A DNA stretch of 64,000 nt, taken from the NCBI GenBank assembly GCA_965235115.1, contig OZ249436.1:63054001-63118000 (forward strand), written 5' to 3'. Positions 15,701 to 18,700 of this stretch are shown one piece after another (position 1 is the stretch's first letter; each line of letters starts with the position of its first letter). Below the pieces are notes generated by a model that ran no database searches, was not told the DNA's origin, and saw nothing but the letters and a program-made list of their open reading frames with translations. A program made the position numbers and the translations under genes. Source of the DNA: Laetmonice hystrix. Lineage: Eukaryota.

Positions 15701-18700
15701 ATATTAATGTAGTCGTGTATTGGACTACCATCTTATTGATACTGTCATAACGTTTTACAACATCTCAAAAATTGTTAACTGTTTATCACACTAAGAAAGA
15801 ATTTCTCACACAGGTAATCCCATCAATATTTACACTAAATATTCAGTGTCCATAAAAGTAGCTATTACAGATGTGTACGGCATATGTTCACATCATTTTA
15901 TCTTCGATACTCTATGTCACTGAGAGAAACGCCATCCAAAATCGCCTCATTGGGTCCAAAAGGGAAATAAAGCGCGTATTTTATGGTGACAAGTAGAACA
16001 AAAACCTCAGTAAAAGAAAACTCTGTAAAGCAAATCCTAACGTTCGAGTGATTACATGAGGATTTCATATTTCATTACTATCAAGTGGATTGCAATTTAA
16101 ATTCGGGAAAAGGCTGTCTGCAATCCTGTCTAATACTCACTGAAATACGAATGTTTCCTTTAGAACAAATGATATATAAAATCCCAATATATCTATACTA
16201 ATAATATTCAAGTCGAATTTTTTAAGATCATACCAAACTATCTTCTCCAGAGTCTACTACAGTATATCGAGGGGAAAAACTAGAACCAGGCAATGCAAAC
16301 TATAGACATACCTTGTCTCTAGTCAGTTCAAGGACACATTATGTGTTATAAAGGCTTATACAATAACGAAACAAGCGTATCACCCGTTAAGGCAAGGAAT
16401 AGCCTTTGTCGGCCTTTGACCGGACAGACGATCGAACCATCTACTTAATCAGGTATGTAACTGAGGTCTGCGTTTGAAAGATGCCAAGAAATTACAGATA
16501 GCATTAGGCATAGGACATCACAACACTTCACATATAACAATATCAAAAGCAGTTTCTTAGGCATTAGTTTTACGACACCAATTCTGGTTCAATCATGTAA
16601 AGTTTCCGTGATATATTTTCCTCCGAGAGAAAGCATTGCTGTTATAACCCGTTTTGAAGAAATACTATTTGGAATCGTTCCTGCGCTGCACAAGTATGAG
16701 GCAGACAACAAAATATCTTGGCTTGGCTGGAACGCTCACACGTCTTTATAGAAAAGGTGTTGTTCTACTTCAGCAAATAAGCACCACACTGACTCGGGGT
16801 AAGGACAACTTACAAGGACATTTTCCGCAATTCATACAAAGTAAGACCTCTACTTCCCCTATCTCTCCAAATTAAACATATTGACTCAAAGACTTAAAAC
16901 TCTGCAAATCACAGGAGCTCCTTTAGTTTGAGAAACCTGGAAATGGGGCAGGAAAACCAGGTTGCCTGGGCAACCCAAGAATATTCATTCTGAGAAAATA
17001 TTGGCCACAGTTGTTGATTCACATCAGGCATGCTATTAGTCATTAAGGGTAACTAAGGGGAAGCATAATCTTATGCTGAACAAGGGGCAGGATGTTTTTC
17101 CTTGATTCAGACCGTATACAGCAATCATGAGAGCTGTTGCCATTCAAAGTAGGTTAACAAGGCAAACACGTCGTTATCCAAGACTCAATATTGTCTACTC
17201 CTTCAGGAAACAATGCTGCTAGAGAAAGTCTCGGTTTTGAATGCGTGCTATACTTGTACAACAGAAAAAAAGTAATAGAAACGGGTAACGGGAAAAAGAC
17301 AAAGGTAGCTTAAAATAACCTAAATACGATATAGCCAAACGCCCTGAGTGAGGTTAAAGCATACAGAAGAAGCCGGCTTTACACCTTCGAGAGGTTACAA
17401 CCATTTGAGAGACACTAACACTATACACATAACTTACCAGTGCCTGTACGGGCATGAAAAAACAATCGCTTCTATCTAAGTTACTGCTGTGGGGTACTAC
17501 TGCCTTATAGTGGTCTAACTCCTGTACATTATCGTTACTCCGGTATGGGCCATCATGCAGCCATCTTTATTTCGAGCGAAATGTAATACTAGCAAATCAA
17601 AACTGAAAGATGATACTGAAACCAAAACTCACTTAAACCAATTCAAAACAACCATTCACTTCTTTCATCTGTAATTTCTTATTCGCTCGTCCTGTAACTA
17701 TTAGACTAATTAAATTGTGCAGGATTTTTTCTGTTTAAGTAGGCCCCTACTAATAGACTTTTATAGAAAAATCCCGATGCAACATTAGAAATAGAAATGT
17801 CATGAATGATTTGCTATAACCTTCTGGCTTGTTCCCAGTACTGCTGTGTGTCCCGTTACATTTTTATTTCAATGCATCAATTCGCATTTGATTACCGAAA
17901 ACTTCAAAATGCACAATTATTCTTCACCCTTTTAGCGTGAGGCATCAAAAGTAAGGCATTACGTATTTTATCTGGGACATATATCCGGCCTTTCATAACA
18001 AAAACATGCCTTAAGAAATAAAATATCTAATTTGCTCTCTAAAGCATCATACGGAACACGAGTTCTCTTAAACTTCTAACCTTTCACAGTACAAGACAGG
18101 GTACGACAGGCGGGGGAGGGGGTGAAGGGGTTTTCACACCTTTACTTCTCATTACACTTGCTTCACCTACCTCAAATTTATTCCGTAGGTCTGCTACATT
18201 GGGCGCCACTTCGTCCGGGCAGGGCAAACTATAGAACTCTCCCTCCTCCTGGCTGAGCAGCTTGTACCAGCCGTCGGCGCCATTCTTGATCACCTCGGAT
18301 ATACCGAATGATAAAGCTCCCATGAAGTCGTTCCTCGACGTACGGTCCCAGTCCCACACTTCTATCGAGATACGTTTTGAGTGATCATCCTCACTAATTT
18401 TGCTGGTGAACAAAAACAAAAGAATGGTGTAATTATGTAATCAAACACATGGTACATCGCTACCTCGTGTGCTGGGGTGGATGGAGTTCTAAGGTTTGAC
18501 CCCCCCAAAAAAAAAAAAATGTGACAGATAATAATTATTGGGGAGGGTTAAATCTAACACTTTTTTTCTGATTTCTGTTTCTGTCCATGTACCCGGAATA
18601 ATAAATGTGAAAAAATGGTTAATAAGTTTGCACCACGACTGCCCCTGCCCCTGCCCCTGCCCCTGGCAACTAAACATTTAACAAAACCAAAATCAGATCC

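Follow-up and report, generated by a model that had tools for sequence, protein, structure and literature searches.

The window analyzed here is a 64,000-nucleotide stretch of the Laetmonice hystrix genome (contig OZ249436.1) whose minus strand carries part of a PKC gene, as laid out in Table 1. Pfam hits fall on successive exons in the order C1_1, C2 (two exons), Pkinase and Pkinase_C, and on the strength of this arrangement, in which C1 is followed by C2, the kinase and the C-terminal domain, we assign the gene to the classical (conventional) PKCs. The closest solved structure to the worm protein is that of PKC beta II. Only one classical PKC copy was found in the genome (627 Mb in 35 contigs), with the exon that encodes the end of C2 matching this locus alone, and the region of the motif that concerns us here is likewise present as a single copy.

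Table 1. Features of the classical PKC locus, in window coordinates; slashes mark exon borders and negative numbers count back from the first base of the candidate exon
Feature	Position	Strand	Basis or remark
Classical PKC gene, part in window: 12 exons, end of C1B (at ~32685) to C-terminus (at 644)	644..32685	-	tblastn, Pfam
Upstream constitutive exon: C2 end and V3 hinge start, ...LRNKFE, phase 0	18171..18402	-	Pfam C2, alignment
Candidate-bearing intron, 2,786 nt, single copy	15385..18170	-	genome search
Putative branch site gcagtaAc, branch A at -38 (17481)	17480..17487	-	read directly from sequence
Candidate acceptor region ttgttttttcaTGCccgtacag	17444..17465	-	U-rich tract -22 to -13, CAG -3 to -1
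Candidate 6-nt exon GCACTG (would encode Ala-Leu)	17438..17443	-	read from sequence
Donor GTAAGT of candidate exon	17432..17437	-	CTG/GTAAGT, 8/9 consensus positions
Downstream constitutive exon: remaining V3 hinge and kinase start, SSSMKDK...VLGKGSFGK, phase 0	15259..15384	-	relatives' exons start likewise

The intron of interest separates the exon that completes C2 and begins the V3 hinge from the exon that supplies the remainder of the hinge and the start of the kinase domain. The first of these terminates in AAATTTGAG/gtaggt at 18171 (donor GAG/gtaggt) and the second opens at 15384 as acag/TCAAGCTCC, the longer intron sequence that precedes it being tgtgtatgacag. Reading and translating both exons establishes that each is flanked in phase 0, as a first-pass annotation of this DNA had stated. 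The same annotation had placed the junction in the V3 hinge, and rightly so: in an alignment with PKC beta II (3PFQ) the C2-end exon covers residues 233-307, which puts the junction at residue 307, and since the crystal constructs of C2 end near residue 62 of this exon (the query) the junction lies ∼14 residues into the hinge. Cleavage of PKC in the hinge produces constitutively active PKM forms, which have been implicated in memory in molluscs.

Within the intron the minus strand of the window reads ttgttttttcaTGCccgtacag/GCACTG/GTAAGT or, in longer context, cacagcagtaacttagatagaagcgattgttttttcatgcccgtacag/GCACTG/gtaagt, in exact agreement with the motif, the coordinates and the 6-nt exon with its GTAAGT donor that had been reported in the first pass. 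Inclusion of the six bases would give LRNKFE-AL-SSSMKDK, with the frame kept because the insert is 6 nt long and free of stop codons and both of its flanks are phase 0. The pyrimidine tract of the candidate is 10 nt in length and U-rich (ttgttttttc), and a UGC is found at -11 to -9 (17454-17452), between this tract and the AG. Three additional AGs, at -33, -29 and -26, are located between the putative branch A and the pyrimidine tract; pairing GTAAGT with the AGs at -26, -29 and -33 produces exons of 31, 34 and 38 nt, respectively, all of them out of frame, so that a further statement of the first-pass annotation is borne out as well. When the complete intron is searched for AG...GT combinations of 3-63 nt, with a donor that agrees with the consensus at 7 or more of 9 positions and an upstream pyrimidine content of 55% or more, the candidate is the sole stop-free, in-frame option with decent signals.

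The quality of these signals can be gauged against 12 real acceptors and 10 real donors of the same PKC gene. With a pyrimidine fraction of 0.70 the candidate falls within the range of 0.55-0.80 at the real acceptors, and its AG-free zone of 23 nt compares with values of 1-55 nt at the constitutive acceptors. The donor score of 8/9 equals that of the best real donors, for which scores range from 6 to 8. A TGC in the interval -25 to -4 is seen at 4 of the 12 constitutive acceptors also, and its presence near an acceptor is for this reason a weak discriminator.

The first-pass annotation had further recognized in the motif the signature of a neural, eMIC-dependent microexon. The code that has been described for eMIC-dependent exons combines a UGC near the 3' site and strong branch sites with long AG-exclusion zones and long tracts rich in UCUC (bioRxiv 10.1101/2021.02.24.432780). 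In SRRM3/4-dependent microexons both the pyrimidine tract and the branch point are displaced from the AG, the enhancer is a bipartite UCU_CUC...UGC, and a UGC is present in 74-79% of the dependent microexons (bioRxiv 10.1101/2024.09.17.613571). The candidate resembles eMIC/Srrm234 microexons in that its length is within 3-27 nt and a multiple of three, in that it would be located in a disordered linker of a signaling protein and in the position of its UGC between pyrimidine tract and AG. It also has the very strong 5' splice site (8/9) that is the pattern of mammalian eMIC exons; those of the fly have weak ones. Unlike eMIC exons, however, it has a short AG-free zone (23 nt), the AGs at -26, -29 and -33 lying downstream of the best branch match at -38, neither UCUC nor CUCU occurs in its 10-nt tract, and it is not conserved in six related lineages. 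With the UGC and a strong donor present and with a long AG-free zone and UCUC absent, the fit to the regulatory code appears to be partial, as judged from the sequence. The UGC position and the strong 5' site of the proposed signature thus hold up, while the long AG-free zone and the UCUC-type tract are missing and the UGC itself carries little discriminating power.

In order to put numbers on how often motifs of this kind arise by chance we have considered a strict class, defined by a YAG, at least 65% pyrimidine in -23 to -4, a TGC in -25 to -4, an exact GTAAGT and a length of 3-27 nt, in frame and stop-free, together with Markov background models (order 1-4) for which 264 kb of this genome served as training sequence. 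The simulations give a rate of 1.6-3 instances per Mb of strand, and in the real sequence used for training, which amounts to 0.53 Mb of strand, there is a single instance, which is the candidate itself. Expressed as expected numbers, this class amounts to about 0.005-0.008 in the candidate's intron, 0.05-0.09 over those introns of this gene that fall within the window and 0.1-0.2 per window strand, rising to dozens or more across all of the sequence scanned (hundreds of windows) and to a thousand or more genome-wide. A second class, untuned to the candidate, requires a donor of at least 8/9, a YAG, a pyrimidine content of 65% or more and a length of 3-27 nt. The non-gene strand of the window contains four such motifs, one of which is also 6 nt in length, and two more are present in 400 kb of other strand sequence. 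From the strict-class rate and the untuned look-alikes it follows that the motif is locally uncommon, yet not beyond chance for a genome-wide scan. Accidental instances outnumber real microexons with such signals over the genome as a whole.

Orthologous introns were obtained from six related lineages, complete in five of them and comprising the first 1,361 nt, as present on the contig, in L006 (GCA_022702835.1). Relatedness is expressed here as amino-acid identity in the C2-end exon, which ranges from 72 to 88%: 88% for L002/L003 (intron of 865 nt), 82-83% for L001 and L004 (167 and 287 nt), 83% for L006, 77% for both L028 (431 nt) and L029 (575 nt) and 72% for L030 (988 nt). In all relatives the upstream exon terminates at the same position, with ...KFE, YE or FQ followed directly by GT, and the start of the next exon is also the same. 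The introns of the six lineages do not align with that of the worm, and nothing in them matches the region of the candidate; no equivalent 6-nt exon was found in any of the six, just a few weak and unrelated look-alikes, and one scan of L007 (∼400 nt past the exon) gave no equivalent exon either. Two of the introns (167 and 287 nt) are too short for any such exon. Conservation in orthologous introns, to which the first-pass annotation had looked as a check on its proposal, is therefore absent in these six non-congeneric lineages, and, so far as can be judged from the introns compared, the candidate exon would not be an old feature of the PKC gene in the relatives examined. A recent, lineage-specific origin of such an exon may be considered instead.

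Three sequencing runs, all from one sample, contain 76-99% of the mostly intronic words of a query spanning 15259-18398. The depth of the reads is even over intron and exons and no joints are observed, from which we conclude that the three runs are DNA. No variants are present within 17359-17568 in these runs. Heterozygous sites in this one individual are dense in 15471-16875 (22 SNPs) and sparse in 16876-18398 (1 SNP and 1 indel); in a single individual such uneven heterozygosity most likely reflects patchy coalescence and not constraint. Queries built from the C2-end and hinge exons returned no spliced fragments of this or a close species from protein collections, the matches being without exception genomic ORFs from other species that cover one exon and continue into the intron, the best of them 88% identical. 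Metagenome contigs gave no match to the two exons spliced together, whether directly or with up to six bases (0-6) between them, and no retrocopy carrying either junction was found in the worm's own genome.

The junction itself is of interest in other PKCs. Full-length matches to a fish PKC alpha (P0268-P0386, P0125, P0106, P0107 and P0113) reveal differences among the RefSeq isoforms of teleost prkcaa, recurring across many genera, at precisely the junction that is orthologous to 18171/15384 of the window. Among the listed proteins a form with no insert, in which ...LRQKFE is followed by KAKLGP, accounts for 45; a 9-residue cassette (DCQINFNLK and variants, 27 nt) is present in ∼25 and a 10-residue cassette (DQAVVEDSDQ and variants, 30 nt) in ∼20, with both cassettes together in three. 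In PKC gamma a related segment of 10 residues is a fixed part of the protein at this point (KFE-ACNYPLELYE-RVRMGP), and other fish proteins read KFE-ACQLNIHYLK-KAKLG. The fish cassettes and the PKC gamma segment indicate that the junction accepts microexon-size inserts in vertebrates, and in the literature collection that was searched no paper links the hinge cassettes of prkcaa/PRKCA to microexons. Like these inserts, the worm candidate would follow directly after ...LR.KFE and precede the remaining V3 hinge. Unlike the fish cassettes, which are conserved and 9-10 codons in length, it would contribute two codons (AL) and has no sequence similarity to them or to the ACNYPLELYE of PKC gamma, and no in-frame counterpart of 27-30 nt was found in the worm intron.

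A second point of comparison is provided by Aplysia, where the classical PKC Apl I is a calpain substrate and where a cassette enriched in the nervous system closes the hinge of the atypical PKC Apl III, with calpain cutting inside this cassette to yield PKM (PMC5650170). The worm candidate is similar to the latter in that it, too, would be a small cassette adjoining the hinge of a spiralian PKC. Apl III differs, however, in being an atypical PKC whose cassette occupies the C-terminal end of the hinge, and that cassette was shown experimentally, whereas the worm exon is a candidate. The vertebrate and Aplysia context makes the idea of a microexon at this position a biologically reasonable one, although it has no bearing on the use of these particular six bases.

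The frequency with which the motif is expected, the lack of conservation, the incomplete match to the regulatory code and a search of protein collections that yielded no spliced fragment all argue that GCACTG owes its splice-like setting to chance and is part of an ordinary intron, not a regulated exon, and we believe this to be the probable explanation. A consensus GTAAGT would simply happen to fall six bases past a constitutive-looking acceptor, and the normal mRNA would most likely join ...LRNKFE straight to SSSMKDK.... We infer that the six bases go unused in RNA and, with a chance motif as the best-supported reading, the candidate is classed as probably not a real feature. What it would mainly illustrate is how readily convincing microexon motifs arise by chance, and motif quality alone should not count as evidence for a microexon.

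The strongest competing explanation is that of a real, lineage-specific alternative microexon of the eMIC/Srrm234 type, by which neurons would insert Ala-Leu after LRNKFE and so make the V3 hinge two residues longer at its start. Several observations are in its favor: the candidate keeps the frame, contains no stop and has no equal in its intron; CTG/GTAAGT matches 8 of 9 positions and the UGC at -11 to -9, between a displaced U-tract and the AG, fits the SRRM3/4 architecture (bioRxiv 10.1101/2024.09.17.613571); the local strict-class expectation is only ∼0.005-0.008; and the hinge is disordered, with a junction that takes microexon-size cassettes in teleost prkcaa and 10 extra residues in PKC gamma. 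Set against these are the absence of the exon from six related lineages, in two of whose introns (167 and 287 nt) there is no room for it, the short AG-free zone, the lack of a UCUC tract and the three competing AGs downstream of the putative branch site. Moreover, dozens or more chance instances are expected over the sequence scanned, and the searches of protein collections and metagenome contigs yielded no spliced fragment or junction. Six-base exons are, in addition, rare. On balance we regard a functional microexon as unlikely. One can only speculate that such an exon might be specific to neurons or affect cleavage by calpain, as had been suggested in the first pass.

In its most specific form the same explanation would have a young 6-nt neural microexon, restricted to this annelid lineage, arise in the sole classical PKC of the worm independently of, and at the same junction as, the inserts of teleost prkcaa and PKC gamma, a scenario that we consider rather doubtful. 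Were it true, the tuning of hinge length at this junction would be a recurrent and convergent route to neuron-specific variants of classical PKC, the Ala-Leu insert could possibly affect autoinhibition or cleavage to PKM, and the candidate would rank among the shortest regulated exons known. It would also be the first hinge splice variant to be reported for a classical PKC of an invertebrate. If inclusion were shown, a neural-type microexon in a kinase linker would gain added interest from its apparent convergence with the fish cassettes.

It is very unlikely that the motif is used as a noisy or decoy site, with GTAAGT pairing at times with the CAG or with the upstream AGs, or serving in an intermediate of intron removal, and yielding no protein isoform. 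In favor of such use, three AGs (-26, -29 and -33) separate the putative branch A at -38 from the pyrimidine tract, and signals as strong as constitutive ones make some recognition by the spliceosome plausible; the out-of-frame transcripts with 31, 34 or 38 extra nt would be degraded. Against it, an intron of just 2.8 kb does not need to be removed stepwise, and splicing at the junction would leave no new 5' splice site behind, unlike splicing at true recursive sites. Recursive splicing at the candidate was rejected on the latter ground.

A number of other features were observed in the window and in the sequences of the relatives. Two direct-repeat pairs, in which 23291-23160 equals 19996-19865 and 23514-23377 equals 23082-22945 (window 19865-23514 overall), bracket a retroelement that has entered the intron separating the two C2 exons. 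The nearest relative found, represented by ORF P0238, is 88% identical in the poorly conserved hinge exon, and its called ORFs are spaced much like the exons of the window after subtraction of the retroelement; this exon spacing suggests that the closest relative is without the insertion. In this relative (ENA assembly ERZ26222911) the counterpart of the candidate-bearing intron, upstream of P0238, would measure roughly 2.2 kb. In an intron of the kinase domain, at 7552-8226 of the window, there are two similar ORF-bearing repeat copies in tandem (8226-8011 and 7770-7552), and a run of 164 N occupies 46198-46361. Among the relatives, the intron that follows the hinge exon in L028 (1975-3900) contains ∼40 tandem copies of a unit of ∼34 nt that repeats the end of the exon (LGKGSFGK). 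Tandem acceptor-like units (...tattttcag/tcgtc...) are found at the 3' end of the orthologous intron of L030 (3990-4150), and through this array the hinge exon is preceded by several candidate acceptors that are nearly identical.
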